Source: Tubulanus polymorphus (taxonomy: Eukaryota > Animalia > Nemertea). Taken from it: 64,000 nt of DNA. Below are positions 12,081 through 50,500 of this stretch, piece after piece. The position numbers and the translations under genes are program-made. Location: NCBI RefSeq assembly GCF_964204645.1, contig NC_134030.1:22776210-22840209 (forward strand), written 5' to 3'. Below the pieces are notes generated by a model. It ran no database searches. It saw only the letters and a list, made by a program, of their open reading frames with translations, and was not told the origin of the DNA. How positions within the stretch are numbered: position 1 is the stretch's first letter; each line of letters opens with the position of its first letter.

Positions 12081-12169
12081 GGGAATGGAGGCGATTTTTT
12101 TCAAAAGAGAGCTTCCGCCATTTTGTTCGCAGTTTGCTGTATTTGTAAAGAAATACACATGGAATCACT

Positions 12170-14132: not shown

Positions 14133-17100
14133 ATGAAGAACTTAATCTGGTTGTTAATTCTACTGCTGACAATCTCGTTCCATTCAGAAGCTGTATCGGT
14201 ACTAAATAAGAGAAATACTGGTGAGTTAAAATGATGAACTACTTTTAAACTGCAGCGTCCGGTCCGTATATTGTGTATTTGATATTTCAGCACCTGATGG
14301 AGTTGTACTGGACAGTGTGAATGTATTACCGGGTACAAGAATATTACGTATATTGTGTATTTGATATTTCAGCACCTGATGGAGTTGTACTGGACAGTGT
14401 GAATGTATTACCGGGTACAAGAATATTACGTATATTGTGTATTTGATATTTCAGCACCTGATGGAGTTGTACTGGACAGCGTCAATGTATTACCGGGTAC
14501 AAGAATATTACGTATATTGTGTATTTGATATTTCAGCACCTGATGGAGTTGTACTGGACAGTGTCAATGTATTACCGGGTACAAGAATATTACATATATT
14601 GTGTATTTGATATTTCAGCACCTGATGGAGTTGTACTGGGCAGTGTGAATGTATTACCGGGTACAAGAATATTACGTATATTGTGTATTTGATATTTCAG
14701 CACCTGATGGAGTTGTACTGAACAGTGTGAATGTATTACCGGGTACAAGAATATTACGTATATTGTGTATTTGATATTTCAGCACCTGATGGAGTTGTAC
14801 TGAACAGTGTGAATGTATTACCGGGTACAAGCATGTTACTTTCGCAGGAAGGCAAAAATGTCAGTATTACCTGTAAACAGAGCAGCTCTACAGCGACTGG
14901 TGTACACTTTGAGCTACAGGTGAACAGTGGAGCAGGAGGGACCTGGACTGCATTACATACAGCATCATCAGCAGAGTGGGTTGGTGAACTAGAGGCTGGT
15001 AAACAGTATAAATGTGTAGCCACTAATTCAGCGGGAACGAAAGAAAGTGAAATCTACCAATCAGATGTGATTAGTGAGTATGGGCCTATGTTTTTGACAT
15101 TAAACACGCCTGTGCGATCATTGCATACACTTCTGATTAACATCGATGTTTTCAGTGTCGTCCGTCGTTGGTTTTTTTAAATGCAGGAGAGTTCCGTTCA
15201 ATTTTAAGAACACTCTGGACTTAATGGGTTTTTGCGATCTGTTTAATATCATGCAATTGGCGGCCATCTACTGTCATCAGTTGACAGCCTTCATACGGAA
15301 AAAGTCATCAGTTGGAAAAAGGTTTTTTTAGGAAAATAACAACAGGTTTTAACTTATTGTCTTGATATTATTATCAGCGCCATCATAGGATACATCTCAA
15401 GAGGGGTTGAATATTGAATCATACACAATTTGTTAATTTATATTGGTACCTATGGATAATTTGTAACCACAATCGGTTACATAATTTTAGCTCATATATA
15501 TTTGAAGTAAGTTTCAATATCATTGGTTTTTGTATATGGTCACCGGGGTTGGGGGTGGCGTTGGAATAATTCAGTATTTCCATAGTATGTTGGTGCCTAG
15601 GCATATTTTGTAACCACAATCAAAGCAAAAATCAAAGTAAAACGTGTCTTTTGTGGACACTATATTTTTGATACTTTAACTCCGTCAGCTTAATCTCGTC
15701 ATAAGTGCCTTATTCTCTGGGACCCTGATATTCAAAACCAGCGTGAAAACTATAATCAAACTCTTAATCGAACTAAGAAACTCATTTTCACTCAGATAAA
15801 ATAAGATGACTTTTCATGTGCTAAACAGTTGAAGAAACGCAACTCTTGTAATCTTCATTTTTTACTCAATTATCTTTTGATTCCTTCAGTCATTTTGAAG
15901 AGCAAACAGAATTTATATCGTAATGTAAATCTTTTATAGGTATAAACATATTTGAAAACCCGTGTAAACTGCATGAATTCCAACCATCACTAGCTTGTAC
16001 TTGTAAAGCCACTAGTAAGATTGGTAATCCAAACATCAAAGTAAAATGGTATGCTGATGGATTTACTGAAGGATCAACAGAAATTGTAAATATGTATGAG
16101 CAAGGCAAAGATACTGCGTTGGAAGATGGAATTATCAACAGGAATAAGATAGATTATAGGTACAAGGAACATGTGAAATTGATTCAATGTCGTTTATGGA
16201 AGTATAATGGGATAGAGATACCGGAACCACTTCAAAAACAAATACTACATCAAACTAAAATGGACGTTACGTGTAAGTTAAAAAATCATTTCATGAAAAT
16301 ATCCAGACAAACTTACGTTTTAAAAATGAGCGCAAAATATCGGAACAATGGGGACCTCGAGGGACCGCCACAAAATGGCACCTAGAAACTTGAAACTTCT
16401 TTATTCATACCCCAGTACAGCTAGCAGACCTATCCATCATAAGCGCGCCACAATATTGTTACTGCGAGGGAGGAACATGGCAGAGTCTCACGATTTCGTC
16501 AGGTTCGACTCCCTGCCGGTGATGATGATGATCCACTCACGAAAGAATCAGAACTCTGTTAGAGAGTGTGTTCGTAAGAACATTGCTTTTGTATTTTTTA
16601 GAATTTGACACTCATTCACCTGATGAAGCTTCTATTCATTAGTAGTGAAAGCTTGCGCGTCAAATAAATAGTTAACCTATCTAGTACTACTCGTCTCGCT
16701 ACTGATCACAAGAAAGGCAGTGAAAACGAATGTTTTGTTTTTTTTCAATCAGATTTTGCTGCACCAGTTTTCAAGAAATCCAGTGAAAATGAAACACACG
16801 CGGCGTATAATGTAACAGTTAATAGTAACCCATTGACTCAACAAGTTACATGTGACCCTCCAGCTGTCGTTCAAAAACTATCAAACTCTCAGTGGAATAT
16901 AACGATACCTATCGTAAATAGTACCACAACTGACTATAGAGGGCAGTGTTTGGCTGACGGTAAAAGTGAAAGGGTCATTGATGTCGCTGGTTATCATAAC
17001 GCCGGTAAAACTGATGAAGCAGGTAAGATTCTGGGGCAGAACTGGATGAATTTTATCTGAATCTGAACAAATGATTTAAGTCCCGGTTGCCACGTGATAA

Positions 17101-20100
17101 AACTTCATTAATTCTAAGCAATCAAACAACATTTAGGGAGGGCTCTAATAGTTCGTACAATTTTAGGGGGATGAGGGATCGTGGAAGTGCTAGGGGTTGG
17201 GGGTGGGGTTAAAAATGGCAAACCTGATCAGACGTACTCCTTTATAGTAAGTGTAAGTCATTATTTCGATAAGTCGTCACATCACTGAAGTCTTCGATAT
17301 TCTTGTGTCCCAATATTATTTGTATCTCTAATTCTATATGCTGTATTTCCAATTTGGATAAGTCAACATAATTGCACATTATTGCACATAATGCACATAA
17401 CTGCACATAATGCGGTGGAGTCTGATGATGTAATCAGATTTGATTCTCTGCACGGTAAGAACAGCATGACAATCCTTTAAAAGTGTCATTTCTCAGTATC
17501 AACTGAACTCGACATATTTCATTATTTGTGAATATATCACGTCATTCAAATTTTACACTTTGAAACCGTTTGTTTTTGGTTTTTTGCATTTCAAAAATAA
17601 CTTATTTACTTTATTTAGAGGCTATTTGAGCTTTGAAAATTAGGAAACAGATATATCTTGCTTGACCTATTTAATTATTCAATTTCATTGCTGTTACTTT
17701 TATCAATAGTAAAAACAGAAATATTTCTAGCTTTTTCTTTATACAATTTAATGCAAATTGCTGATTTGTTTGAAATCCAATTCAAGAAGGAATGAATGGA
17801 GGCTTTTATCAATAGTAAAAATAGAAATGTTTCTAGCTTTATTTGATACAAATTGCTGATTGGTTTGAATTTCAGTTTCAGATGAAGTGAATGGAGGCAG
17901 AGTGGCTGGTGCTGTAATCGGTATACTGATATTACTGATTCTGATAATACTGTTTATACTGTGGCGTCGTGACTGCTGTAAGTTTTACATAATATCATCG
18001 ATAAATCTTAAAAACAATAACAAACAAACTGCAGAAAACTATTATTTCTAATTGACAGTGCGGTGCAGAAAACCTTATGATGAACTAAATAGATGTGGAA
18101 ATTGTAAGTTCTGTAGTAATTCATATACATAATGCTTAAAATTGAAAAATAGTTTACAAGACTTGAGGGATTCGGGGTCTTTTAGGTTGCCGGATACATT
18201 TCATTCTCAATTATCTGTGAAAATCTTTAATCTCGGGACCCTAAATGCACAGTCTTATTCCAAATATGTGGTCGTAAAGTATTAGACTGGTCTTTAGTCG
18301 TTAGATTGGTTATAGAACTAAAATATGTACAGACTGGCCTTAAGTCGTTAGATTGGTTATAGAACTAAAATATGTACAGACTGGCCTTAAGTCGTTAGAT
18401 TGGTTATAGAACCAAAATATGTACAGACTGGTCTTAAATTGTTAGATTGGTTATAGAACCAAAATGAGCTTAGACTGATCTTAAGTTGTTAGATTGGTTA
18501 TAGAACTAAAATATGTACAGACTGGCCTTAAGTCGTTAGATTGGTTATAGAACTAAAATATGTACAGACTGGTCTTAAATTGTTAGATTGGTTATAGAAC
18601 CAAAATGAGCTTAGACTGATCTTAAGTTGTTAGATTGGTTATAGAACTAAAATATGTACAGACTGGCCTTAAGTCGTTAGATTGGTTATAGAACTAAAAT
18701 ATGTACAGACTGGTCTTAAATTGTTAGATTGGTTATAGAACCAAAATGAGCTTAGACTGGTCTTAAGTTGTTAGATTGGTTATAGAACTAAAATATGTAC
18801 AGACTGGCCTTAAGTCGTTAGATTGGTTATAGAACTAAAATATGTACAGACTGGTCTTAAATTGTTAGATTGGTTATAGAACCAAAATGAGCTTAGACTG
18901 ATCTTAAGTTGTTAGATTGGTTATAGAATCAAAATGAGCTTAGACTGGTCTTAAGTTGTTAGATTGGTTATAGAACCGAAATGAGTTCAGACTGGTCTTA
19001 AGTCGTTAGATTGGTTATAGAACTAAAATATGTACAGACTGGTCTTAAATTGTTAGATTGGTTATAGAACCAAAATGAGCTTAGACTGATCTTAAGTTGT
19101 TAGATTGGTTATAGAATCAAAATGAGCTTAGACTGGTCTTAAGTTGTTAGATTGGTTATAGAACCGAAATGAGTTTAGACTGGTCTTAAGTCGTTAGATT
19201 GGTTATAGAACTAAAATATGTACGGACTGGTCTTAAATTGTTAGATTGGTTATAGAACCAAAATGAGCTTAGACTGATCTTAAGTTGTTAGATTGGTTAT
19301 AGAATCAAAATGAGCTTAGACTGGTCTTAAGTTGTTAGATTGGTTATAGAACCAAAATGAGCTTTGACTGATCTTAAGTTGTTAGATTGGTTATAGAACC
19401 AAAATGAGCTTAGACTGGTCTTAAGTTATAGTTAGATTGGTTATAGAACCAAAATGAGCTTAGACTGGTCTTAAGTTATAGTTAGATTGGTTATAGAACC
19501 CAAATGAGCTTAGACTGGTCTTAATTCTGTTAGATTGGCCACAGAACTAAAACTGGTCTTGAATCTAAGCCATGACTGCTCCATTACAAAACATTTAGTT
19601 CATTGTCAATTAAGATGATGTTTTTTTCAATCGTAGATTATCCGCTGTCAAAACCGGTCTCGACAGTGGCCGATAATTGAGAGTTCATGAGGTCTGAAAT
19701 TAGCCTCACCTCTAGATATGCTTATAGTTCCTATTTGCAGTGCTGTTGAGAAGTGAGCCGTGCAGATGTAATTGCTGTGAGTTAAAATATTTTGTTTGTT
19801 TGTTTTCAGTGACTTGTTTCCGCAAAGATACTGCCGATGAACCTGATAATGAGGATGACTCCTCAGATGAACTGTGTCATTGTTGCTGCTGTGAGTTCTA
19901 AAAAAACCTTCTTTGAAACTGATGAAGATTAATATTAACATTAACGGTAGAATGGACTGTTGTATTATTTTCTATTTGCAGTGCTGTTGAGAAGTGAGCC
20001 GATTAGATGTAATCGCTGTAAGTTGTATTAACATTGAAAACATTGATGATTAATCCTGCAAAATTAACTGTTGTTATTGTAGTTGGATATTCGTGCATTT

Positions 20101-23100
20101 GAATTCAAAGTCTAAGAGTGTTTGAAAGTCTTTGGTCACAGTTTGTATTGATGTGAATATTCTTCAGACCGAGTTCATCGTAGATGATTAAAATCAGTCG
20201 TGTTCAAAGTTTTACAGTATCATCGGTTCAATTGTGGCCTCAAAATGAATCATAGCATTAGCTACGTTTATAGATAGCATTAATATTATCCTTTTTCTCT
20301 GGTGGATCAATTGGTTAGGTTTTGTTGTGTGTCAGGTGAACGTGCATCGTGTAAATAAACAGTATTTCTGTTTTCTAATTTACAGTCCATCGTGAGGATC
20401 CGGAATCTAAAGATGTGAATGAATTGTTGCGTTGGACAAGTGAAACCTGGTATGAAAAAGGTAAGATTCTCTCACATGATTTACTGCACATATTCTCAGA
20501 TATCGGTTTGATAATTTTAGGTGTTGTTTTCTCTTTGTAGATCATGAGAATTGGGTGAATACACGTGACCAACTGCAGCCAGGTATTTATAGAATTATTA
20601 ACCCTTTATTTCTATAACATGTAGAATATCTTACATGAATACAGTTCATAGATTTAGGGATTATTCACTTATCATCTGGTCTCGGTTTTACAGACTAGTA
20701 TTATCTTTAACCCGGGGTTAACTCTATTCATTATCAATTAGGTTAACCCCCGGGTTAAAGTTAATACCAGTCTATAACACTGAATTATATCCAACAGATA
20801 TTGTTTCATTATCACAACTGTAATTATCAACTTAAGTTTGTGCTTTGCTAACCACTTCGGTAGTTCAAAGAATGTCATGATTGGAATCAAGATGGCTGAC
20901 TGGTGCATTTTTGCACATTTTTGAAGGCGCTTCAGTCAATTGAGATTAGGTTTAATCTGCAGCCAAATATTGAGCACAATCATCCTTTTTGCGAAATATT
21001 GAAGATTTCTTGAGAACTCTTTGTTCAATTGAGTTGATATTTAGTTTCTACCCTAGACCCACATCTGCATTCCAAAACATATTGCTGGCAGCCATTGTTT
21101 AACACAGAAGTCAGCACTTCACGCATATTTGGGTTAATTGTCTTGACGTTTGAAATATATTATAAAATATTATACCCTGAACACAACACCCTGCCACATA
21201 AACATTTGGCTGACTGGTTTTCGTTTTCAAAAATCAGAACTGTTTTTTGGGGTTTTCTAGAGGGATTTATAAAGACACTTTGATAGATTTTTTATTGATG
21301 TTTGTTTTATACATGTATTTACCCTAAATGTATCTGCAGTTATAAAAATGTAATAGTTACAGCCGAGACTATTGTTGTTTGGCAGGGGTGGATTCCGGGT
21401 GGTCCGAGGTTCGAACCCCCTTTCTGACCAAGTGCCCTAAATAAAGGCTTCTCATCCCCTGTACTGGTCATTATCTAATGTGCACTAAATATGCATAAAA
21501 TTGATGTACCTGTATTATCAATTATTTTTGCACTTCGTGCGTGCGACGCTTGCTGGGCCACTCAACGCCGACAAAGTGCCTTTTTCGTGTAAGGTGAAAC
21601 CCCCTTTTTGTGACCAAGTACCTGAAATAAAGGCTTAAGCCCGGTACCGATCTTTGAGGTCATTGAAAGGTCATTCAGTCCAGGTAAATTAGATATTTAT
21701 TGTAATTTCATTTCAATCAAACACAATATAAACTCAGATAATTCCTTTATAAATCAACTACTTGTTTGAAACGTTGATGATTGTATTTCAAAAGTGAATT
21801 ATTCTAAAATTTCCTTTTCTAGAAATTGTTAGAATAATCGGCGATGTTTACGGAACTGAGAATGATTGGGTGATAACAAGAGATACGGATAAACAAGGTA
21901 AGATGAGTGATGACTCAGTTGCCGGAGGAATAGCAGAACTGTCTGATTGGTTTATTGCAACCCTGCATACCATCCTGTCTTTAAACATGACAAATCTGCC
22001 TCCTATCTTCATCCAGCAGTAATTCAAGCTGTTTGATGCACAGTTTTATTTGACTATTGAACAAATACTTTCAATATTTCATTTCAGCAATAGCTATCAG
22101 AGAATTCCTGTTCCACCAGTTATCAGGTGATCAAAGTAAGTAATTGATTACTGTTGTTGTAAGTAATTGTCTATAGTTTGTGTTATGTTCATATACACAT
22201 GCACGTGTGTGTTTGTAATGTGAACATGTACATGCGAGTTATGGTTACATGTACATGTGAGTTGTGTGAACATGTACATGTGAGTTATGTTTTCATGTTA
22301 TGATAACGTGTACATGTGCATGTGAGTAATACATGCATGTACACGTGAATGATACATACATGTGAGGCATGCGAACATTTGCATGTGATTTAAGTATACA
22401 TGTTCATGTAAGTTTACATGCACATGTGATTCGTTACATGCACATGTGTATTAAGTTAACAAGAGTTTGATCAATGTATTTTCAGGTGTGTTAGATTTGG
22501 TCAAAGAAATCCTAAGTAAGTTTACGAAACGACTCAATATTTCCTCTTCAACTCGAATCTTGGATTCAAATGTGTTTATAATTATTTATTGACAGGAAAA
22601 TACTTTAGAATAAAGAATTTAAAAATGAAACTATCAAATGAGATCGGTAAGAGTTGATTGAATACAGTTATTGATGTATGAGTTTATTGATTATTATTCT
22701 ACTGTCAACTCATTTTGTAAATGTATTAAAGATAAACTACTGAACAAGAAGAGGTCAATAGATGGCGCTGCTGCAGTTTACAATAGAGATGAAGGTACCG
22801 CACTATTATTCACGGTTGACCTGAAATATTCAGCTTTGCAGATAGAAAAGTAGCGAATTCTATTCAAGATGGCCGCTTGGCAGCCTTTTGACAATAATGA
22901 ATAAACCTGATACAAGCGACCAGTTTAAAATTTATAATAATTCACTGTGTTATTTCGTGAAATGGAATGTTACTACGGTATCGTTTTTTTTTGCCTAAAT
23001 TCGTAACGTTTTTACCAAATCGGATAAATCAAAGTTTAAGATGGGAATTTCATTTTTAAACATATAAGACTAGAGCTTCAGAAATACTCAAGTTAAAACA

Positions 23101-26100
23101 AAATAATCAGATATACATTTGTTATTTAAGAATAAGATGTGATACAAATTAGGGGTAATGATACAGCATGAAACAGAATTTCAAATCTATTTTTTCCGTG
23201 TTTCAGATGAAGTTCATGTTAGTTTTATGACGCAATTGGATGAAGAGAAAAGACCCCTGACAAACAAAGAGAAACAGTTCATCAGAGATGGTCAGTAAAA
23301 CTATGGAATCTATCTGAGTTCAATTTTCACATGTAGTTTCACAGAGTTGCCAGAGAGTCTAAAAAAGTGTTTAAAGAAATTAGTGACGAAAGTTGCTAAC
23401 TTTGTGTCTACCACATTTTTCAAGTTTTATACAGATGTCTGTTAGTAATGATAAGTCATGTAGTTAACAGGGTTCAGTGATTCACTGCGTCACCAATATT
23501 TAGGATTTATCTATATTTATAGATTTGCAAAATAAAACGAGCGCCAAAAGAGCAACTGCTCTGCGTGAACCACATTCAGCTTATACCTTTTTGTAGGTTT
23601 CAAATCCCCAGTAAACGGTTATTGAATGTCTATATTTTCAGTTGCTTCAGCAGTTGAATCTGTTGTTGATTTCTTTGCTAAAATGTCCGGTAGGTTCCAT
23701 AAATCATTTCAGTAAAAATACTGTGGAGTTTGTTGTGGAATCATTGAATGATTGATTGTGTTTATTTTTACTGTAGATGCTGAATTATGTGAACGAGGAA
23801 TATTCAACATTAAACGTAGGTTTTAATTCTCATTTATCCTCGACTGAGTTTATAAATACATGTGCTTTATAATCTACTGTACATGTACATGTAGATTTTA
23901 TCTGTACATGTACATGTTAGTTTCCTGAAGTGTTTGACTGAAGTATTTAAATACTTATTCTTTATATTTCAGCTACTGTTGAAATTGCTGGTAAGTTATG
24001 ATATTCACTATGATGTTTAAACTGGTGCTGAGTCTGTTCATTTATAACTGAAATATCGCTGTATCTTTTTATAGAAAAGTTTGTGAAAGAAACACTTGAT
24101 AAAGAAGTTAAACAACAGAATGGTGAGTGTTTAGTTAATCTAGGAATCTATGAGGGGGGAGGGCTTATAACTATAAACTGATTACAAATTAAACATATTT
24201 TGTTCAATTACAGAAAACCTCGTCACACAAATAGAAAACCAGAAAGTAACTGATGAAACAAAGACAGGTTTGTTAATGATCATAAATAATCCATTCAGAT
24301 GTTGTCAATATTAAACTATCTACCGGTACTGAAAACATGTAGTTAGAAATTAACCCCGCAATGATAATTTATAGAAACTATCTTTATGATTGGTTTTACA
24401 GAAATGGAAGTGGCTGACCGGGACCGTTCTGTGAACAAAGATATTTGTGGTAAGACTGAAAATGTTATTCTTTCCTTATTTTTCAAGCTAATTACAAATC
24501 GTTTCATTAATGAGAAATCGGAGGTATAATAAAACCAGCTAGACCCGGTAATGTGGAACAATTGGCAACGTTGTCAAAATTCATCCGCTTTGTGGGAAAT
24601 TCAAGGTTTTATAAAACCCGGTTAATCCAGATGTATTTTGGATGAAATTCTAGTTTGAACTGATCCGGTTAATATTCATGTTATTCTATTCATGTATTCA
24701 TTTGTAGAATCAGTTTTATTTGAGTCAAGTTTGCAGAAATTAGAAGAGAACAAACATTCTACAGAACTAGATAAAAGTAAGTGTAAACTTTCTTTGTCCC
24801 TAGAACTAAATTTACACTGTTTTTGATGACCATGAATTGAAAAAGAAATTTATTGATGTCATCAGATTATCAGAGGCATCTGTTTTGATTCAGAGTCAAG
24901 TTTTAGCTGACAGTTTGTATCGATGTGAACTTTCTTCAGACCGACTTCATCGTTGATGATTAAAATCAGTTGCATTTGAACTAGAAAGTTGCCCAGTTAG
25001 TATCATGGCAACAAAATCAATCATAGCTTGAATTAGATTAGATTATTCTTTATCGCTCCAAATTGTTGAATTGACCATGGACCAGGATTTCTGTCAAAAT
25101 GTTCCATATTGGGAAATTGTTTGATTTGATCTGCTGTTTAATTGTTTTTTTTTGCAGGTATCTATGAAATAAGCCGAGATGTTTTAGGTAAGAACTAAAT
25201 AATAGTAACAAACTATAAAAATCGAGGTCTAGGGTCGAAAGCAGACGCTTTAAAAGAAATTTCTGGCGGACAAACTCTATCAAAACTATTATCAATAGAA
25301 CTCTGACTGAAATCTTTGAGCCATTTCGTTTATGTCTCGTGATTTCCTGATGAGCTAGAAACTTGTTTGACTGACTTAAATATCTCAAATATTTCGAAAG
25401 AGGTTTAAAATAGAAGTGTTGATTTCAGCCAAAATTGTGAAAAATGTTTTTTTTTTCTTCAGAAATCAAATTGAAAATCGCAGTTTTCGAATCTATCAAA
25501 GATAAGAGGCCAATGTCAATATTGCATCAGCAGGGTTTGTTCCATCATTTTCCAAGATTCAGCCTGAGCTCAATTTTTTTGTGGATCTCAATTTCTCATT
25601 GTTTTCACGGTGAATCACTTGTAGAATTGTACGCTGAACGAGCTGAAAGATTTCAGAAAGAACTCAAAGAGAAACTGAAACAAGAGGAAAATGAGGAGAG
25701 AAAAAATGAGGAGGAATTGAACAGAATAATTCACAGTTCAGTTTGTCAGGCGTTTAAATATATCACTGATATGGATGAAAGTAAATATCGATTTTATATC
25801 TCAAATTATACATGCACTTAACATGTCACATATTATATGTGAATCAATGCACATGTTACATGTTCATGGAAATGAATGCACATGTAACATGGTTCAAACA
25901 TCTTTGATACATTTCAGAAACTCTGATGGATAATAAAGTTGTAGGATATGGAGGTTTGTATATAATTCACATGTTTCAATCACAAACCAGTTTTTATCAT
26001 AAATAATCTGTTTGATTTTCTCTATTTATATTTCAGTGAGTCCAGAAGAGATAAGTGAGTTCTGATTGATATTTGTAAATATTCTCAGTACAGTAGACTG

Positions 26101-29100
26101 CGCGCTTGTCTTTGATTTCATGTTGTAATTCGTCATATTTACCTGTTTATAAGTTGTTTGTGATGTCAGTGATTTTCTATATTGATAGATTCTAAACTAC
26201 ATGAATTAGCCGATAAAGAGTTTGAAGATAGGAAATTAGGTACTGTACACATGACAAAGTGTGAAATTCAACATGTTTTATGTTTAAATTTTATCAATGT
26301 TTATTATCGATGTTTATTACAGTCATTAGAGATGCATCAGTCGAACGTGTAAAGACACCTGAAGAAATAGTCACGCTAAAACTGAATATGCCGGACCAAC
26401 TCCGCACTGGTAAGTGATTATACAGTGAAGTGGTACTGTTTGAATTGGAAAATGAATTATGAATATTTTGAAAAGTTGAGAGCGAGGCAAATCAGTTCAT
26501 TACAAATTTTCTGTGTTTTTTAATCGTTTATTCAATTTTTGTAGAGTTGGATTCAGCTGGTCGGGATCCAGTTATTCTGTCGGATCGAGCAGGTATTGTA
26601 TAAGTCTGTTATTAATCTAACCTGTTTAAAAATTTAATACAGTGAAAATGAATTGCGAGTAATTTTGACAAGTTAAGAACGAGACAAATCGGTTCATTAC
26701 AAATTTTCTGTGTTTTTAAATCGTTTATTTAATTTTTGTAGAGTTGGATTCAGCTGGTCGGGATCCAGTTATTTTATGGGTTCGAGCAGGTATTGTATAA
26801 GTCTGTTATAAATCTAACCTGTTTAATGCCACTGATCTCACCATGTATTTCATCGGTCCCAACAGTGGCTGGCTTGATATACTTTTTCTGTAATAACGGA
26901 ATTTTCAGCTTCTTAGGAGCACTAGCCTGGAATATTCTGCAACTGATCTTTGTCCCTCAAAAGACGGTTAACTCTCTTAAGTCCTTCTTGCAAAAAGTCC
27001 TTAATCTGATCATTTAGGAATTACTAGAAAATGTTCTTCTATTTTAAACTCGATTATGAAGAGCAGATCCTGAAAATAGTTTTTCTAACCCGGATTTACT
27101 GGTCTAAATAAATGAAGTTTTAAATTGAAACCAAGCTCAATGAATGTAGTGTCTATGTTTGCTGTTTTTATGTGAATTTCAGTGGAATATTTCAAGGATG
27201 AATTCATTATTGCAATACAATCTGATGAATCATTGAAAACTGCTACTCAAACTGCTTTAGATAAAAGTAAGTTACATCTACAGTAAACTACATTTACATC
27301 TACAATAAACTACATTTACATCTACAGTAAACTACATTTACATCTACAGTAAACTACATTTACATCCACAGTAAACTACATTTACATCTACAGTAAACTA
27401 CATTTATATCTACAGTAAACTACATTTACATCTACAGTAAACTACATTTACATCTACAGTAAACTACATTTACATCTACAGTAAACTACATTTACATCTA
27501 CAGTAAACTACATTTACATCTACAGTAAACAACATTTACATCTACAGTAAACTAAATTTACATCTACAATTAGATAGAGTTATTCACTGAGATTTTCAAT
27601 CATTGAAATTTGTTTGTGGTTTTTTGAAGAATCAAGCAACATCAACGATTTGTTGAGGAAAGGAAACTCGAAAGGTAAAATTGTCTCATGAAACGTGGCT
27701 AGATGTTTGTTTTTACGCACTGAATAATTTCACTGTGTAAAATGATTCAATGATTTCTTCTAATTTCAGTTGTTGATAGAATTTATGGTGATGTGAAAAA
27801 CAGAATACAATCAATTTCTACAGGTTTGTATTTTGATAATTCACTATCAATTCTTATATTTAAATGTGAGATATATTCCCTCCTTTTTAGGTTTTTTCAT
27901 ATCGTATAATTGTTATGATATATCATTTCATTTATCATATGCATATCATGTCATATAACGCTAGCATATACAATATCATCAATCATATATCAAATATCAC
28001 TTATCTCATCACGTCATATCACATATCATATCATTTATGCTTGTAAAACGTAATGTTGAAGGTGATTAGTTTCATTTCATTTTTCATCACGGATTGATTT
28101 ATTTTTATTTCTATTTGTGATTTCAGAGGAATTAAAGGAACGAGGAATCATAGTCTATAGAAGTGAGTAAAATTCCTTAGTTTCAAGTTACCCGTAAACT
28201 CCTAACCTGTATATTCCTAACTCTTAACTCCTAACAGTGAGACTGAACTAAATTCAACCATAGTTAAAGTGAACTGTATGAATTGGCCTGTTTAGATCTA
28301 CTCAATATATGAATTATTGTTGTTTTCAGTAAACGATGAAACAGCGAGTAAGTACTGATAACAACTTACACATTAAAGTCTACATGAACAGATATATGAA
28401 ATGATATGATAAGTTGTGTTTTGATAGCTCTTAAATCCAATGAAACTACTCAGAGTGATTTACAGATGTTGCTTCCTTCAACAGGAAGTATTGGTAAAGA
28501 ACAACATGTTTCACTCTCCCTGCAGTAATCTATTGTGTTTATTCTGTTTCAGTGAAACATATTGAACCAATTATTGAAAACAGAATCCCACAGTTTAAAG
28601 GTGAATACATTATGTTGACTGTTAAGTGTTTAGTATACTAGCAAAGAACCGGCCGTCCTGTACGGGTTTTATCGTGATTGAGTTTGAGTTGATTATTTTA
28701 CTTCTCATGTGGAATACACAGTTATTTCGCGTAAGGTCGACTGTATTTTGTAGGAGGATATTGTGACGCGATAGCAACATAAATAGTTTACATCAGTTGA
28801 CATCATCATAGTTTATAAATATGTCCTTACTCTTCATTAGTTACATTTTAACATTTTATAATTTCAGATTCGCTAGTGACTGTTTTAAAAGAGAAATGTC
28901 AGGCTGTCAGTATTTCGTCATCTGAACCACACTGGGTTTATGATATATCTACTGCGTGTAAGTGCACAGTGAAATCAGTTTGTGATTTATAATAGAATTC
29001 TATTGTATAAAAATTTGTCTATTGTTTATTACATATAGTGTCTGAACTCAGTGAATTTACCGGTGAAACTTTAAAGACAAACACAGATTATTGGAGACAA

Positions 29101-31982
29101 GTCAAAGAATGTTTCGGTAATGGTTTCACTTCTGATTTTTTTTAATGATCAGATTTTTATGTTTTGAATAATAATTGTTTGTTCTGTTTGAATAGGAGAT
29201 GAAATTAACAGTGAAACAAATACAACTGAACTGACAGAAATAGGTGAATATAAAAAAAGATTCAGATAAACAAAAATATAGCATTGAATTTATTGAAGAT
29301 GAAATTCATCAATTTAATCAGATCTTTAGAGGCGTCTGTTTTGAAAGTCGTCACTCTTTGTTCATACTTTGTATCGATGTGAAAATTCATTTATTTATTT
29401 ATTTGTTTTCAGTTGACGAGTGTTTGGGTGAATGCACTGATAAATGGAATACTGGTGAGTACCTCGCATGAGTACCTCTCATGAGTGAATACCTTATTCG
29501 CTAACGCATGAGTATCTCTCACGAGTATTCCTCATGAGTACCTATCATGAGTACCTCTCTTGAGTACCCCTCATAAGCAACCCTCATGAGTATCCCTCAT
29601 GAGTACCTCTCATCATGGACGTATAAACGTATAATCTAGTTTATACGTCCATGCATATATTAACTATCGGGATATGTGATCAGTGTAGTGGTGAGTACAT
29701 GAGTATCAAATAGAAACCCTTAACTGAGTACCCGACCCTGGTACCTGAATTGTGTAATTTGAATGATGTAATTCAGTGCAAACTAAACCAGTTTTTCTGT
29801 GAACTAATGTTTCATGTTTTGATATTTGTAGACTATTTTAAGAACAACAAGATGATTGTAGAGACAGGTAAATATTGTATAGCTCTGATATTCAGCCCAG
29901 TACTGCCCCCTGGTGACTGTATGAGATGTAACTATTCTGTTATTTGTATTTTAGACGAGATTGTTGATGAGATAAAACGCGAATATTTTCAAACTCCCGA
30001 ATTTAGAAGTAAGTTTCCAATAAAATCAGAACCTGTTTTAACAACCAGAACTCAAATATGAATATCTGTATGTATTGTATTATTATTTATAGGATCAGTT
30101 GAGACTGCATTGAATGAAGCTATCGAGAATTCAGGTAATTGAATATTTCCAATAAATTAATTTCCAATTAATTTTTCAATGAAAATTTTGAATTGACTTC
30201 AGAATTGAGTTCAGTTTGGCTGAAAGTGTATGTTTTTATTGTATTAACATATTCCATGTTTACAGATAAATCAAAACAAAACAAAAAACCAGACTATGAA
30301 GCTGCAGGTTTGTAAAACTCTTATTTCTACTAATTTGACCTGACGAATTTCACAGATAAGAAAACTGATTTTGAAATATGTCAGTTATTTCAATTTCCAT
30401 GGTTTCTCGTCGTTACTAGCGTGGTAGTCACCCTTATTGATGATTTACCCCTTAGGGTAACTTTTAAACGTGGTCTATGAAACCAGGAAGATTATGTAAT
30501 ATTCTGTTCAGAATTATATCTTATCATTATTTCAGTGAAATGGATAGCTGATGAAATGAAAGGTAAATTGACTGATAATAAATACTAAATTTCGTGATGA
30601 GTTTGTGTTGATGTTTACAGAATCATTTCTAATTTCAGGTTTCACGGTTAAACCATCTGCAACTTCAGGTATGTAATATTGTTTTATATCTATATATCTT
30701 GTGTGGGTGCCTCATCTGTCAGACAACTGGGCAGGAATTTGAGTAACAATTCACTAAATATCTTGATGTGTTTTCAGAACGTAATGAATTTGCTAAACTT
30801 GCACGAGCAAAAGGTAATGAATAAATTATGTGTTTTAAAATTGATGTTATCGATTTTGATAATGTTTTATGAGGTTACGTTTTCAATTTCTATTTCAGTA
30901 ATGAGTAAATCAGAAGAGTTGATGGATAAGATACGTGCTATAACAAATAAAGGTAATCAATATTGACTTCTATAAACATCTTACTGACTCAATAATTCCA
31001 TATTCATGAATTCATGTTTCCACATTCGTATAACATGTCTTATGGTTCCCAAACCGGAAATTTCAAAATAATATTTCCTGGCTCAAAATATTTGCGTTGT
31101 AAGTTGATAGATTTTCCTCTAGTTCTGGAAATATTTTTGAAATTCAATTTGCGCTTCGTCTTTCTTCGGTGATCTTTCTTGAAAATCACCTTCATCAACC
31201 AATCACCAGTAAAATGTTTATAGTTTGATGCATCAGTTTTTCGGGAATAATTTATTTCATTTTCAGCCGAATTAAGAAGGCTCGGTTTCCTGGTAGATGA
31301 TGAATAGAGTAAGTAAATCATACAGTCGTCACTTTCTGATTTAAACCATTTGATCGAGGTTAAACTAGTTTTGAGGTTAAATGGTTTGAAATGAAATAAA
31401 TTGATGAAATTTAGATGAAATTAAGTTCCATTTTCTCCTGGTTTATGAGGAATCCAGATTTAGAATCGTTTTCCATCAGAAACTAGTTGATTGTTAAAAA
31501 AAGAGTCGTAGAATTTAACCAAATCTCATAATCCGGATTTAACTGATCCTGATTAGGTTAATCCGGTATGGTTCTAATCTCTACTGAACAGTTTAAGAGA
31601 TAAATGAGCAACAATGTTCAATATCATAATATCAAAACTCTTAGAATAAAAAGAGTATGAATTTTTTCCTTAAGAAGATATTCATTCAACGTTTCAATAC
31701 TTTAAATAGCTAAAATATATATGAATAAACAGCATAAAAACAGTTACAAATTAAACAAATTAAGGAAACTTATAGAATACAACAGTGAATATAAGTTACT
31801 GATTGGATATCTAAAGCAGAACAAACTATAAGGTGTTTGTAATTGTATTTGATGTTTGGTTTATATTGTATTCATTTATAGGGCTTAGTAGAATGTTGAG
31901 AGATGATAGTCCTGGATCGATTGTTGATGATAGTAGTGATAGTAGTGATAGTAGTGGTATTGACCTAATGGTTTTATCCTAG
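14133..31982 (+). CDS. Type-B receptor B1: signal exon 14133-14220; Ig-like exons 14783-15073, 15940-16272, 16753-17022; TM exon 17876-17977; ~46 cytoplasmic micro-exons from 18059-18103 to 30899-30952; stop either in exon 31267-31308 (TAG 31305-31307) or in terminal exon 31882-31982
   Basis: Signal peptide MKNLIWLLILLLTISFHSEAVSVLNKRNT. Domain 1 has ITC...YKCVATNSAG (I-set-like). Domain 2 has CTCKA...KWY...QCRL. TM is VAGAVIGILILLILIILFIL followed by WRR. Every exon checked is phase 1-1 and a multiple of 3 with AG/GT ends, except one mutated donor at 25502 (e.g. 20386-20460, 22486-22515, 23973-23990, 25625-25780, 28868-28957). Indels against B2 that I compared are in frame. Confidence 0.8.
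14265..14830 (+). repeat. 82 bp tandem repeat spanning the intron/exon boundary of B1 Ig exon 1 (7 acceptor copies)
   Basis: gatatttcag|cacctgatggag with the AG ending at 14290, 14372, 14454, 14536, 14618, 14700 and 14782. Confidence 0.95.
16320..16720 (+). mobile_element. Interspersed repeat, probably a Penelope-like terminal remnant with a minimal hammerhead-like motif at 16620-16655
   Basis: ctgatga-a-gcttcta-ttcat-tagtagt-gaaa-gctt fits CUGAnGA / stem II / GAAA / palindromic stem III, followed by aataaa. The segment is absent from B2. Confidence 0.5.
18284..19560. repeat. Intronic minisatellite, 47 bp unit, ~27 copies
   Basis: agactggtcttaagttgttagattggttatagaaccaaaatgagctt, starts at 18331, 18378, 18425 and onward. 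Confidence 0.95.
20675..20785. mobile_element. Short hairpin MITE-like insertion
   Basis: Inverted arms agactagtattatctttaacccggggttaac / gttaacccccgggttaaagttaataccagtct. Not seen in the B2 intron. Confidence 0.55.
27273..27570. repeat. Intronic minisatellite, 22 bp unit (tacatctacagtaaactacatt), ~13 copies
   Basis: Period of 22 read directly. It starts immediately after the donor of exon 27183-27266. Confidence 0.95.
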
Positions 31983-32697
31983 AATCGAGTGAGATTTTAT
32001 ACGGAAAAAAAAATAAAAATGAAAGGAAAAAATGCGATTCAAATAAAATTTGTGATATTTAATTGAATAACTGTGGTCATATTAGTAAATTGATAAATTA
32101 ATTCATCAGCTCAATTGTGATAACATTAATCAATATGAACAGATATTATCTGCTTTTATCTCTTGTGTGAAAAATGAATAACATGTTCCTCGTTTTCCCG
32201 CGTCTCTGTTAAAACCTCTCGTTTTGATGTAGTCAGTGGAGGATCAGATTTGTTTGTAGGACTTATATACTGAAATGTGCTACACTGACTACTCAAATAT
32301 ACAGTGTAACTGATGAATTGTACATGAAATACTGAGTGCAACCTACGAGCAATTATCTAAGATAATTGTTAGATAATTGTTCGTAGGTGTAACTGAATTA
32401 TAGTCTAGATGAAATGCAGTGTAACTGAATTATTGTACCGTAGTTGAAATATAGTTTGTAATTATATATCGAGCAGAAATACATTGTAATTGAAATTACT
32501 TTTTACAAAATTATCAGCGGTCTTAGGAGGATTTACTAAAACTTCTCTCAATGCTGAATCTTACAATGTATAATTGTATTTTTATACAATGTAACTGGTT
32601 TAACGATATTACAATAATGTAAGTTAAAAACTGTACAAATTTATTAATGATTGACTTGATCAGTATTATTATTGAAAACAGTGATAAAATTCATTTT

Positions 32698-44500: not shown

Positions 44501-47500
44501 TCTACAGCGACAGGTGTACACTTCCAGCTGCAAGTGAACAGTGGAGCAGGAGGGACCTGGACTCCAATACCACTCGGTATATCGACGGTGTGGAAAATTG
44601 TACCCGAGGCTGGTAAACAGTATAAATGTGTAGCCACTAATTCAGCAGGAACAAAAGAAAGTCAAATCTACCAATCAGATGTGATTAGTGAGTATGGCGG
44701 GAAACCTGTATGGTTCTCCAAAAATGCAACTGAACCTAATTTCAATATTGTAGAATGCAAATGGGCTAAAAAAAAAACCTTACGACTTCAAAGGGACTCC
44801 CACAATCAGTTCAGAAAAAGACGAAAGGATCGTGAAGTAAATGAATTTATGTTAGATCTTCCTTTCAGCGTTAAATTCATTGTCATCATCAGGCAAATTC
44901 AAGCGTTGACTCTACAAGAACTTATCGTCTTTTCTGAACTGATTGACAGATCTCTGGTGCTGACTCGGATGACAATTACTAAACCAGTAGCCTTCACACA
45001 TTTACTGTTCATTGTCGGTTATCTGACAATACATGTATTTTTTGTGTCAAATTTCAACGCTCTTATTCTCTGTGGAAACAAGTCCGCATATCCTTTCATT
45101 CAGCACTTATCAAATAATGCTGGGAAAAATAGAAGAAATGTTTCCTGTGCACTTGGTATTTTTTGTATATAATTTGTATTATAGGTATAAAGATAAATGA
45201 AAACCCGTGTAAACTGCATGAATTCAAACCATCACTGGCTTGTACTTGTGAAGCCACTAGTAAGATTGGTAATCCAAACATCAAAGTAAAATGGTATGCT
45301 GATGGATATAGAGGTTCCAAAAAAATTGAGATTTTCAAAGAGCAAGGGGTAAATACTGCGCTGAAAGATGGATTAATCAACAGAAATCAGATGTATTATC
45401 TGTACAAGATTGACACAACATTGACTCAATGTCGTTTATGGAATTATAATGGGATAGAGTTACCGGAACCACTTCAAAAACAAATACTACATCAAACTAA
45501 AATGGACGTTACGTGTAAGTTGTAACATATTTTCATGAGAAAATTTCCATACAATATCAAACTGAAGTCTGATAGTTAGAACATTCTGCCGTGGTGTCCA
45601 CATATGAATGTCCCTGTCTTGTGACGTAAGAATTTAAGCTTTTTCGGTTAGAAGTTATTTATTTAGATGAAAAAATCAAACGTGTCCCTTGAGAGTTGGA
45701 CTTAAATCAAACATTATCGCCCATTTTCTCCTTTTACCTCATATTTATTATTTAATTATTGTAACAACACAAAAGTTCGCATTGTATTCCCATTAATATG
45801 TAATGTAAAAACCATTGCAGTAAAATAGTTGAAAAATTATAATATTAAAAACCAATTCAGTTGAAAAGGATTCAATTCAATTAAAGAATTTAGCAAACAT
45901 TGAATGATATCCAAAAAGTTCTTCTTTTCAGATTTTCCTGATGAAATTCTGACGAACGATACTTATACGGGACAACCTGACATTAGAACTGAAGGAGAAG
46001 TTGTAGAATATATTTGTAGAACAGAAGGTGGAAGGCCCGATCCTACAGTGATATACCAACAGAAGAGAAGAGGTTCTGAACAATGGGAGCCAATTCCTGA
46101 TCCACAACCTCGTAAAGTACCCCTCAAAGGGACGTTAAAAGGTTTTGACACGACCTACAAGTTCAATGCTGATTTCAAACTGCACAATGGAACGTCATTT
46201 CGATGTGCTGTAGAGGAGAACCTTACGTTTCCAGAACCTCAGCAATTTAATCCAATCATCGTTCATCGTAAGTAACAGATTTATTGTTGTATTTCAGAAA
46301 AGATCTTCGGCTTTTGGTGTTAAGAGTTCTCTTTGGAATAGTACCAACCCCAGTCCTGTATACCTATCCACCCTCGGCATATGGCAGATATTTGTAACAA
46401 CTTTGATTTTGTGTTTTCAATCAGATTTTGCTGCACCAGTTTACAAGAAATCCAGTGAAAATAAAACAAATGCAGCGTATATTGTGACAGTTAATAGTTA
46501 CCCATTGACTCAACAAGTTACATGTGACCCTCCAGCTGTCGTTCAAAAACTATCAACCTATCAGTGGAATATAACGATACCTATCGTAAATAGTACCACA
46601 ACTGACTATAGAGGGCGGTGTTTGGCTGACGGTATTAATGAAAGGGTTATTGATGTCGCTGGTTATCATAACGCCGGTCCAACTGATGATCTAGGTAAGA
46701 TTCCGGGTCACAAACGGATGATTTTTATCTGAATCTGAACAAATGTTTTAGGTCCTCGGCGTCATCATCTCTTAACTGGATGAATTTTATGCAGTCTTAC
46801 GTCGCCGTAGGAAAAGTCGCAACAAATTCGTCTTTAAGATCCGCCATTTTATATTTTCATTTCTATTTACTAAGTTTAAGTCATCATTTGGATAAGCCAT
46901 TTACATATTGATCTGAAGACATTACTCAAAGTTATCATCGTGGAAAGTCCAAAATATTCAGCTTTCTAACTTTTTATTTAGAAGTCGTTTAACCCGATCA
47001 AGGAACAATTAGTTTCAGTTAGTTATCGGAAATTGCTGAACTTAAAGTAAATTCAAATATTAATCACTTGTGGATATTTTACATTCAAATTTCCAATTCT
47101 ATTTGAAAGTTTTTGCTTCAATTCAATTGCTGATACTTTTATCACTAGTTACAATAGAAATATTTACAGCTTTATATAATCTGATTTAATTGCTGCTCAA
47201 TTTCAGTTTCTGATGGAGGGTATGGAGGCAGAGTGTTCGGTGCTGTAATCGGTGTACTGATATTAGTGATTCTGATAATACTGTTTATACTGTGGCGTCG
47301 TGGCTGCTGTAAGTTTTACCTAAAACCATCATTAAACAGTGATGAAAAAACTGTTGAAATAAAATACTAGGTCCAGTTCCACAGTTCTGAGTTAAGATTT
47401 AACTCAGAGTTAACTCATTCAAAATGAACTGATTTTAACTCAGAGTTAACTCTAACTCACAACTGTGGAACTGGGTCCTGTATTATTTCTAATTGACAGT

Positions 47501-50500
47501 GCGGTGCAGAAAACCTAATGATGAACTGTGTAGATGTGGAAATTGTAAGTTCTGTTATAATTCATTAACACAATGCTTAAAATTTAAAAATAGTTTACAA
47601 GCCTTGAGGGATTCGGGGTCTTTTAGGTTGCCAGATACATTTCATTCTCAATTATCTGTGAAAATCTTTAATCTCGGGACCCTAATTGCACAGTCTTCTT
47701 CCGAATATGTGGTCGTCAACTATTAGACTGGTCTTAAGTCGTGAGATTGGTTATAGAACTAAAATATGTACAGACTGGTCTTAAGTTGTTAGATTGGTTA
47801 TAGAACCAAGATGAGCTTAGACTGGTCTTAAGTCGATAGATTGGTTATAGAACTAAAATATGTACAGACTGGTCTTAAATTGTTAGATTGGTTATAGAAC
47901 CAAAATGAGCTTAGACTGGTCTTAAGTTGTTAGATTGGTTATAGAACTAAAATGAGCTTAGACTAGTCTTAAGTTGTTAGATTGGCTATAGAACTAAAAT
48001 GAGCTTAGACTGGTCTTAAGTTGTTAGATTGGTTATAGAACCAAAATGAGTTTAGACTGGTATCAATTTGTTAGATTGGCTACAGAACTAAAATGAGCTT
48101 AGACTGGTCTTAAGTTGTTAGATTGGTTATAGAACTAAAATGAGTTTAGACTGGTATCAATTTGTTAGATTGGCTACAGAACTAAAATGAGCTTAGACTG
48201 GTCTTAAGTTGTTATTGGTTACATAACCAAAAATGAGTTAAGACTAGTCTTGAATATAAGCCGTAACTGTAAAACTAGCTCCTACAAAACATTTAGTTCA
48301 TTGTCAATTAAGATGATGTAATCTGCAATCTATAAGATTATCCGCTGACAAGACCGGTCTCGACAGTGGCAGATAATTGAGAGTTCATGAGGTCTGAAAT
48401 TGGCCTCACCTCTAGATACGCTCAATATCGCATACATGATTATTGCAAGTTAACATAATTTGTTTGTTTGTTTTCAGTGACTTGCAAATTACCTACTGCC
48501 GATGAACCTGATAATAAGGATGACTCCTCAGATGAACTGTGTCATTGTTGCTGCTGTGAGTTCTATATATAAACTGATAATGATTAAGAGTCAGTAACTG
48601 TAGAATAAACTGTTGTATTATTTTCTATTTGCAGTGCTGTTGAGAAGGGAGCCATGTACATGTGATTACTGTAAGTTGTATTAACATTGAAAACATTGAT
48701 CACAAAATAAATTCCCAAACTCTCGAGAAATTAATTTTCTAATTCGCAAACTGGACGGTTGATGAAGGTTACGCAGTATCATCGGTTCAATTGTCTCAAA
48801 ATCTATCATACCATTAGCTACCATTGTGTGTGGCATTTACGATATCCAAATCACAGCATCATCCATTTTCTTGGTTGGATCAATGTGTCAGGTTTTGTTG
48901 TGTGTCAGGTGAACGTGCATCATGTAGGACAAACAGTATTTCTGTTTTCTAATTTACAGTCACGCGTTTGGGTCCGGAATCTAAAGATGTGATTGAATTG
49001 TTGCGTTGGACAAGTGAAACCTGGTATCGAAGAGGTAAGATTCTCTCACATGATTTAATGCACATATTCTCAGATATCGGTTTGATGATTTTAGGTGTTG
49101 TTTTCTCTTTGTAGATCATGAGAATTGGGTGAAAACACGTGACCAACTGCAGCCGGGTATTTATTAACCCTTTATTTCCATAACATGTATAATATCTTGC
49201 ATGAACACAGTACCTGATGCCCTAATGTAATGAAGCAGTACATGTTGTTTATAATAATCGCTGTGAATCATGTACAGGATGATGGTTTTTAATTTATATA
49301 TTTGTAGCTGGAGACTTTGAGGTCATTGACACATTCAGTCCATGTATAATCATCATATGAATTGAATCAAAATTGTTTATTTATCAATCAACTATTTGCT
49401 TGTGACGTGAGTGAATTCATTTGGAACTTGATTTACTATGAATTATCTTTCATTTCGTTTATAGAAACTGTTAGAATAATTGTCGATGTTTACGGAACTG
49501 AGAATAATTGGGAGATAACGAGAGATAAGGATAAACAAGGTAAGAGGAGTGATGACTCAGTTGCCAGAGGAAGTGCAGAACCGACTGATTGGTCCCCTGC
49601 AAGTCTCTCTAAACACGACACTTCTGCCTCCTATCTTCATCCAGCAGTAATTCAAACTGTTTGATGCACAGTTTATTTGACTATTGAACAAATAATTTCT
49701 ATATTTCATTTCAGCAAAAGCTATCAAAGAATTCCTGTTTGGACAGTTATCAAGTGATCAAAGTAAGTAATGGTTTACACATAGTTTGTGTTAAGTTCAT
49801 GTACACATGCACATTAATGTGAACATGCACATGTGAGTTGTGTGAACATGTACATGTGAGTTATTGTTACATGTACATGTGAGTTATGTATTCATGTTAT
49901 GATAACGTGTACATGTGCATGTGAGTAATACATGCATGTACACGTGAATGATACATACATGTGAGGCATGCGAACATGTGCATGTGAATTAAGTATACAT
50001 GTTCATGTAAGTTTACATGCACATGTGAGTAATGTGTGCATGTACATTTGATTGATACATAGTAAGTTGTGAGTTGCGGAAACATGTTCATGTAAGTTAA
50101 CATGCACATGTGATTTGTTACATGCGCATGTGTATTAAGTTCGATCAGTGTTTATATATTTCTAGGTATGTTGAATTTGGTGAAAAAAATTCTAAGTAAG
50201 TTTATAAAATCTCATATGAATTTTCTCTTCAACTCAAACCATGTCTCTAAATGTGTTAATTATCTATTGACAGGAAAATACGCGACAATAAACAATTTGA
50301 AAATGAAACTATCAAATGAGATCGGTAAGAGTTGATTAAATACAGTTATTGATGTATGAGTTTATTGATTATTATTCTACCGTCAACTCATTTTGTAAAT
50401 GTATTACAGATATATTACTGAACAAGAAGAGGTCAATAGATGGCGCTGATGCAGTTTACAATAGAGATGAAGGTACATGATTATCTACTGTTCAAATGAA

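Follow-up and report, generated by a model that had tools for sequence, protein, structure and literature searches.

It is probable, we propose, that a selected array of very short exons in the nemertean Tubulanus polymorphus encodes a helical assembly or adaptor scaffold that links immunoglobulin (Ig) receptors to NLR-type signalling, and that its diversity is mostly germline. The array forms the 3' two thirds of the gene B1 (LOC141906786), which lies in a window of 64,000 nucleotides (nt), C6:22776210-22840209 of the 268-Mb T. polymorphus assembly; positions given without a chromosome name are counted from the first letter of this window. B1 is one of about 20 tandem copies of a T. polymorphus type-I Ig-receptor gene family, and a second copy in the window, B2 (LOC141906884), was used as the main comparison gene for its tail. 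The tail would act as an extended helical scaffold connecting surface recognition to NLR-type signalling, in cis in sister genes that combine Ig and NACHT, and through like-with-like association where NACHT is lacking, as in B1 and B2. Symmetric phase-1 exons are the classic exon-shuffling substrate for extracellular modules; here 46 consecutive ones encode an intracellular region, and the family of about 20 paralogs shows the expected outcome, with blocks duplicated, lost and transferred, including onto an NLR. A literature search found no paper describing these gene models, which are public in RefSeq as 'uncharacterized protein'.

An array of symmetric micro-exons

The run of short symmetric phase-1 exons on the plus strand at 18059-31307 is real. 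A scan of 18000-32000 for open AG...GTRAG segments with a preceding pyrimidine tract gave 15 plus-strand candidates of phase 1-1 and zero to two in each of the remaining phase classes, while the minus strand yielded none; the same scan in B2 gave 13 of phase 1-1 versus zero to three elsewhere. With the single exon at 25627-25779 (51 residues) as the query, a HMMER search of 1.84 billion representative proteins returned five proteins, all of them T. polymorphus RefSeq models. The RefSeq product of B1, P0001 (XP_074652249.1, LOC141906786, 647 amino acids), is a letter-for-letter match to 38 B1 exons, beginning with the ATG at 22625 and ending with the stop at 31305-31307, all internal exons being flanked by AG/GT and divisible by 3 in length. 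The B2 isoforms X1 (P0009) and X2 (P0003) likewise match exactly, over 44 and 43 exons, and, beginning with its first Ig exon, B2 has phase-1 introns only. For each of the ten tail exons of B1 located upstream of the P0001 start (18059-22646), the B2 RefSeq model contains an intact counterpart.

The B1 tail model therefore comprises 47 coding exons, with 2441 nt and 813 codons. All 46 internal exons are multiples of 3 and of phase 1-1, with lengths of 18-156 nt (median 48, sum 2400 nt); 30 are no longer than 51 nt and 41 no longer than 81 nt. The 46 introns between the tail exons have a median length of 136 nt, 18 of them being shorter than 100 nt. The original prediction, made from the sequence of the window, of 46 symmetric phase 1-1 exons of 18-156 nt totalling about 2415 nt was thus essentially right, the model having 46 internal exons plus a terminal one. 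Several of its details required correction. The shortest credible intron is 76 nt and not 58-59 nt, and the exon beginning at 27770 ends at 27823 and not at 27865. The segment at 23345-23440, which had been counted as an exon, is a pseudo-exon: RefSeq does not include it, and in eight of eight paralog copies at least one of splice sites, length (101-117 nt) and frame is disrupted. The array had also been extended to 31982, but the RefSeq coding sequence stops at the in-frame TAG that lies just before the donor of exon 47, and 31982 is reached only if the 42-nt exon with this TAG is skipped. The paralog P0002, for its part, has a Ser/Asp-rich C-terminus of comparable kind downstream of its version of exon 47.

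Two exons distinguish B1 from its relatives. Exon 2 (19741-19776), a copy of exon 4 that is peculiar to B1, lies only 33 nt ahead of exon 3, which means that exons 2 and 3 cannot both be spliced as separate exons. Exon 21 (25463-25534) is 72 nt long in B1, against 39 nt in B2 and other paralogs as modelled by RefSeq, because the GT donor used by the family reads AT in B1 (at 25502) and a downstream donor is used.

Selection on splice sites and reading frame

Paralog statistics were drawn from 30 loci centred on 23100-26500, together with B2 and B0, a further B copy whose end makes up the first 2.2 kb of the window. Among 405 exon copies (27 paralog loci, B2 and B0), AG and GT were both intact in 401; 398 had a length divisible by 3, and six contained a stop. 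In the 172 copies with fully aligned flanks, AG differed in 0.3% and GT in 0.6% of cells, as against a divergence of 7.7-8.8% in the flanking introns and 7.1% in the exon bodies. Since the splice sites diverge far less than either the flanks or the exon bodies, this comparison of copies indicates that splice sites and reading frame are strongly maintained by selection and that the residues are weakly constrained. Exon indels between copies were multiples of 3 (78/81, 48/51, 78/87, 123/90 and 54/42 nt). The core exons 12-22 were found in 17-24 copies per exon, nearly all intact, and exons 7-10 were intact in 5-15 paralog copies.

The ratio of nonsynonymous to synonymous substitution rates (dN/dS) was 0.66 against all copies. 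A comparison of B1 with B2 had been suggested in the original prediction; it gave 0.80-0.86 for the tail, and the lowest value, 0.39, for its middle third (exons 12-23).

Tail blocks in front of a NACHT domain

The transmembrane (TM) exon at 17876-17977 codes for a hydrophobic helix of 21 residues, after which comes WRR. The tail then starts basic and Cys-rich, and the exons after the TM exon are Cys-rich and acidic with CCC-type clusters. In the standard type-I reading, the tail that follows this TM exon is cytoplasmic, as had been predicted, and the finding that the same blocks head a NACHT-LRR protein of cytosolic type agrees with this.

That protein, P0004 (XP_074661813.1, 1217 amino acids), has blocks 14-22 and 32-37 of the tail at its N-terminus, so that about 300 residues of tail blocks directly precede the NACHT domain (PF05729, E = 8e-17), which is followed by an LRR-like region. 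Exons 12-23, the part of the tail with the lowest dN/dS between B1 and B2, overlap the exons 14-22 that head P0004.

The same elements also occur in line with Ig exons in the genome. On the minus strand of C6, an Ig exon (22276773-22277030) is followed by tail blocks (22267832-22271441 and 22262769-22263272) and by a NACHT region (22260581-22261048) that sits in an open frame of 921 codons. On the plus strand of C9, an Ig exon at 306596, tail blocks at 311772-314720 and NACHT at 320392 are collinear, the locus as a whole spanning 306596-320856. Three more Ig exons lie 7-15 kb upstream of same-strand NACHT frames of more than 900 codons (Table 1). Judging from this collinearity, such loci may encode membrane-anchored Ig-tail-NACHT receptors. 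None of the 27 genome matches to NACHT falls in the window.

The predicted tail protein

The tail of about 813 residues is acidic and highly charged (13% Glu, 10% Lys and 8% Asp; 37% charged) with little Gly or Pro (2% each), and it is predicted to form long helices and not a compact known domain. At E <= 1, no credible Pfam family was found for it. There was no sequence match to the tail in the PDB, where a family profile gave only two weak matches at chance level. In the ESM Atlas, the tail's own model has a predicted local distance difference test (pLDDT) value of 0.44, and its best look-alikes, at 0.75 and 0.78, are at chance level. AlphaFold2 applied to P0001 (7 family rows) gave 28 helices and no strands, with a pLDDT of 36.7 and a predicted template modelling score (pTM) of 0.20, and for P0005, a natural fragment of 179 residues (16 rows), these values were 54.6 and 0.23. 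Residues 2-88 of P0005, corresponding to exons 20-22 and including the 156-nt exon, form one long modelled helix in which the mean pLDDT of 10-residue blocks is 53-78.

The original description of the tail as largely helical and without a recognised domain is borne out to this extent, at low model confidence; the AlphaFold check that it had proposed yields helices only, with a confidence too low to judge the fold. It had also described the exon at 25625-25780 as coiled-coil-like. The Glu/Lys-rich sequence of this exon and the long modelled helix are consistent with that, again at low confidence.

Self-comparison of the tail gave weak similarities only, and a simple internal repeat was rejected. 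A unit of three exons (36-39, 18 and 48-51 nt) does recur at exons 14-16, 23-25 and 32-34, and in two of these units the first exon carries an ELxxRG-type motif, while exons 23-25 show a similar pattern that is weaker. This recurrence points to old duplications of multi-exon units. A motif similar to the ELxxRG type also precedes the NACHT domain in P0004.

The position of the tail blocks directly before NACHT in P0004, and their helical prediction, resemble the N-terminal effector domains of NLRs (CARD, PYD, death-fold and helical N-terminal domains), this being the place at which NLRs have their signalling domain. Unlike these, the tail has no Pfam match to a death-fold, TIR or NACHT N-terminal-helical family at E <= 1, the ESM Atlas lead to NNH3 is the one that scores 0.78, and no compact six-helix bundle is predicted in the AlphaFold2 models, which are poor. 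As regards a death-fold, the ELxxRG helix-turn motif was noticed by eye only, and no Pfam or PDB sequence match accompanies it.

A protein of this composition could instead be a charged-helix spacer of the single alpha-helix or coiled-coil type, in which length and frame matter and sequence does not, and which would hold NACHT off the membrane in Ig-NACHT genes. The many charged residues with scarce Gly and Pro would suit a spacer, as would the long helices with low pTM and no detected domain, and the strong conservation of splice sites and frame next to weakly conserved residues. Against a mere spacer stand the more constrained middle third, the overlap of this third with the exons kept in a NACHT-LRR protein that has no membrane anchor, and the retention at three places of a three-exon unit with an ELxxRG-type motif. 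We consider a mere spacer unlikely.

Germline blocks and splice isoforms

When the exon peptides of B1 were mapped onto 20 family proteins, exons 5-39 were found in a common order. Blocks 25-38 are duplicated in most full-length paralogs; P0012 has three copies of the distal part, and P0021 has two copies of exons 5-6. B2 lacks a 2.1-kb segment carrying exons 40-47 (B1 29857-31967 versus B2 59282-59544), and its RefSeq protein ends there; the segment is present after about 18 other paralog tails. Tail length among paralogs ranges from about 640 to about 1250 residues. A fresh frame-neutral gain can be seen in B1, where a 197-bp tandem duplication (26448-26826; 1.9 copies, 91% alike) has doubled one 48-nt exon and its intron to give exons 27 and 28, which are a single exon in B2. 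Since every exon is of phase 1-1, runs of exons have been duplicated, lost and moved between paralogs with the frame kept, and single exons can be skipped. The frame-neutral duplication and deletion foreseen in the original prediction are thus observed between paralogs.

The prediction had gone further in proposing that any subset of exons could be skipped to give combinatorial diversity. Eleven RefSeq loci with multiple isoforms were compared, each with two to four protein isoforms; nine of these loci have an isoform that omits one or two exons, or else the membrane-anchor exon (36, 45, 18, 90 or 102 nt). Single micro-exon skips affect the 45-nt counterpart of exon 1 in B2 isoform X2 and 36-nt, 45-nt and 18-nt exons in other loci; a pair of exons totalling 90 nt is also skipped, and relatives of exons 24 and 30 are among the exons skipped in paralogs. 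Other differences are site shifts of 3 or 6 nt and tail-only alternative starts. As a rule, the NCBI pipeline calls such isoform variants only with transcript support. At LOC141906974, LOC141906946 and LOC141907917 (P0023, P0029 and P0036), annotated isoforms leave out the 102-nt TM exon in frame, wholly or for the most part. The resulting protein would have a signal peptide but no anchor, and its Ig ectodomain would run straight into the 'cytoplasmic' tail.

Frame-neutral skipping therefore occurs, but the proposal that any subset of exons can be skipped finds weak support in these isoforms. Splicing would be the main source of diversity, acting somatically, if micro-exons were skipped independently to give many tail isoforms per gene, much as in the micro-exon genes (MEGs) of schistosomes. 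All 46 internal exons are symmetric, so that any skip keeps the frame, and the RefSeq skips listed above are of the kind required. Nevertheless, the annotated isoforms are only two to four per locus, nearly all exon copies keep strong conserved splice sites suited to constitutive use, and the variation that is visible consists of germline block duplication and loss. We regard large combinatorial splicing as very unlikely. The evidence favours germline block shuffling, and the diversity appears to lie mostly in the germline, between about 20 paralogs, with splicing adding a few variants per gene.

B1 as a member of the receptor family

Family copies are found mostly on C6 (17.6, 18.07, 20.4-20.6, 21.69-22.37 and 22.77-22.83 Mb) and also on C9 and C19. 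The 156-nt exon has 18 genome copies with 84-98% protein identity, and the membrane-proximal Ig exon has 29. Full-length paralog proteins are of 1038-1750 residues. The search of representative proteins found no matching protein beyond T. polymorphus, all 16 protein clusters being from this species. The features of a type-I receptor of the immunoglobulin superfamily (IgSF), namely a signal-like N-terminus, Ig-like exons and a TM exon, are present in B2 and the paralogs; the Pfam matches of B2 to Ig_2 (E = 3e-4) and C2-set_2 (E = 1e-3) are both weak and below the gathering score.

In B1, the TM exon and three Ig exons are intact, the latter being counterparts of B2 RefSeq exons with AG/GT and frame preserved, and the third Ig exon of B2 (45932-46267) has no counterpart. 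The signal exon of B1 is a candidate only. It is the sole segment within 10700-14790 that combines an ATG, a hydrophobic stretch and a donor, it is unconfirmed by RefSeq, and it ends in the motif KRNT, as does the B2 signal exon (41519-41638).

It is conceivable, then, that B1 is decaying or repurposed and makes a cytosolic tail-only protein or nothing, and no full receptor. Its RefSeq product has only 647 residues and starts inside exon 10, one Ig exon is missing, the signal exon has strongly diverged, the donor of exon 21 is mutated, a TAG ends exon 47 where P0002 reads on, and the dN/dS between the B1 and B2 tails is 0.80. Against this, all 47 tail exons, the TM exon and the three Ig exons keep their frame and AG/GT; at about 10% divergence, an unconstrained gene should have lost a splice site in about one third of its exons. 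Furthermore, an intact paralog, LOC141907671, also has an annotated tail-only isoform (X3). Decay of B1 therefore seems improbable to us.

Weighing the scaffold proposal

Several observations weigh against the proposal that the tail is a scaffold linking Ig receptors to NLR-type signalling. The AlphaFold2 models are poor, and the 'extended helices' are therefore weak evidence. The dN/dS of 0.66-0.86, with exon divergence near that of introns, fits a loosely constrained spacer equally well. Only one annotated NACHT protein with tail blocks was retrieved, and the collinear Ig, tail and NACHT elements are no more than candidate joint genes. Since the RefSeq product of B1 is a tail-only protein starting at 22625, a complete receptor may not be produced from B1 itself. 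In addition, the three sequencing runs that cover 19700-25699 are genomic contigs that cross introns, with no GT..AG joints.

A more specific version of the scaffold proposal is that the tail is a new homotypic signalling module which couples tandemly expanded, polymorphic Ig receptors to NACHT-LRR proteins, and which includes transmembrane Ig-tail-NACHT receptors, as part of a spiralian system for self/non-self recognition or pathogen sensing. The uniform phase-1 layout would then let evolution, and in part splicing, rewire the intracellular part as freely as the shuffled ectodomains. We put this version forward as a doubtful one. If the tail is an assembly module common to surface Ig receptors and NACHT proteins, it would represent a new wiring of innate immune or allorecognition signalling, found in a phylum with almost no immunological data, and a rare case of a membrane-anchored NLR.

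Comparison with known systems

The original prediction had compared the array with the MEGs of schistosomes, whose exons of 3-81 bp encode small secreted proteins and whose introns reach 5 kb (PMC10526429). The comparison holds only for the symmetry and size of the exons. Most of the coding sequence of the B1 tail is likewise in short exons that are multiples of 3, 41 of the 46 internal exons are within 81 nt, and there is a gene family with some annotated alternative splicing; this applies to the tail only, the Ig exons being far longer at 270-336 nt. It fails for protein type, intron size and homology. Unlike the small secreted MEG proteins, the tail is the cytoplasmic part of an Ig receptor of more than 1000 residues, encoded after a TM exon. 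The median tail intron is short beside those of the MEGs, no sequence relation was found (no Pfam match at E <= 1, and only T. polymorphus proteins matched), and diversity here is mainly between gene copies.

Titin PEVK and nebulin are modular elongated intracellular proteins with symmetric repeat exons and heavy skipping. The tail is similar in being an elongated, non-globular intracellular region of many short exons that can be dropped or duplicated in frame. It differs in that their exons are recognisable repeats, whereas the tail exons are mostly mutually dissimilar, and in that it is a receptor tail from a family confined, as far as searched, to one nemertean. By analogy, the tail may work more like the modular exon arrays of such elongated intracellular proteins than like MEGs.

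The known tandemly expanded IgSF families of immune or allorecognition type in invertebrates use short tails with Tyr motifs or known domains for signalling. Like them, the present family has a type-I Ig ectodomain with a single TM segment, comprises dozens of tandem paralogs, evolves fast and has Ig exons of phase 1-1, but its tail is of 800-1200 residues, predicted to be helical, built from micro-exons and common to NLRs.

Gene context and repeats

The window contains two tandem gene pairs, A1/B1 and A2/B2, and the coordinates of the B features are given in Table 1.

Table 1. Coordinates of the B1 and B2 features and of the Ig-NACHT loci outside the window.
Feature	Position	Strand	Remarks
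B1 candidate signal-peptide exon	14133..14220	+	29 residues, hydrophobic core, phase-1 GTGAGT donor
B1 Ig-like ectodomain exons (n=3)	14783-15073, 15940-16272, 16753-17022	+	all phase 1-1
B1 transmembrane exon	17876..17977	+	102 nt, phase 1-1; counterpart of B2 exon 47207-47308
B1 tail exons 1-4, juxtamembrane, Cys-rich, acidic	18059-18103, 19741-19776, 19810-19890, 19982-20017	+	intact B2 counterparts
B1 tail exons 5-11	20386-20460, 20541-20582, 21823-21897, 22088-22135, 22486-22515, 22596-22646, 22732-22794	+	intact in B2
B1 tail exons 12-17, conserved core	23207-23290, 23642-23689, 23777-23815, 23973-23990, 24075-24122, 24214-24267	+	exact RefSeq match
B1 tail exons 18-22, conserved core	24402-24449, 24708-24776, 25158-25187, 25463-25534, 25625-25780	+	exact RefSeq match
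B1 tail exons 23-31	25918-25953, 26037-26054, 26189-26239, 26323-26409, 26545-26592, 26742-26789, 27183-27266, 27630-27674, 27770-27823	+	exact RefSeq match
B1 tail exons 32-39	28127-28162, 28330-28347, 28553-28600, 28868-28957, 29039-29116, 29196-29243, 29413-29454, 29832-29867	+	exact RefSeq match
B1 tail exons 40-47	29955-30008, 30093-30134, 30266-30307, 30536-30562, 30639-30668, 30778-30813, 30899-30952, 31267-31307	+	exact RefSeq match
Pseudo-exon	23345..23440	+	open and AG/GT-flanked in B1 only; absent from RefSeq P0001
Ser/Asp-rich exon	31882..31982	+	phase-1 frame open until a stop near 31980; coding requires skipping of the 42-nt TAG exon
B2 tail	47500..59294	+	36-37 phase-1 exons; early end where exons 40-47 are deleted
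Ig exon and downstream NACHT frame	C6:22308281-22319250	-	same strand
Ig exon and downstream NACHT frame	C6:18353974-18369304	+	same strand
Ig exon and downstream NACHT frame	C6:18436134-18445267	+	same strand

The interleaved A genes (8710-10692 and 37827-38849) terminate in long series of YM[DN]M-type tyrosine motifs. Since A genes alternate with B genes along the array, the two may have been duplicated together as a pair. The spacer between A1 and B1 (10900-14100) has no similarity to the matching A2-B2 spacer, and contains overlapping open reading frames on both strands (12695-13301) and a 150-bp tandem repeat, which suggests that an insertion may have replaced the upstream region of B1. 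In an 82-bp minisatellite (14265-14839 in B1, 7 copies; 42454-44438 in B2, 24 copies), the acceptor of the first Ig exon is repeated together with the initial codons of that exon, and the candidate signal exon of B1 lies just upstream of it.

An introner or transposon origin of the tail introns was considered and rejected, since the introns are mutually dissimilar except for recent duplicates and a dispersed repeat of about 115 bp. This intronic element, at 30368-30487 in B1, has at least 25 copies of 76-81% identity on many chromosomes and resembles a short dispersed repeat of the SINE or MITE type. A candidate exon at 30356-30379 overlaps its edge and is absent from RefSeq. Two further minisatellites differ in copy number between the genes: a 47-bp unit occupies the intron that follows tail exon 1, with 27 copies in B1 (18282-19552) and 11 in B2 (47723-48251), and a 22-bp unit in the intron downstream of exon 29 is repeated 13.5 times in B1 (27272-27568) and 44.5 times in B2 (55640-56589).

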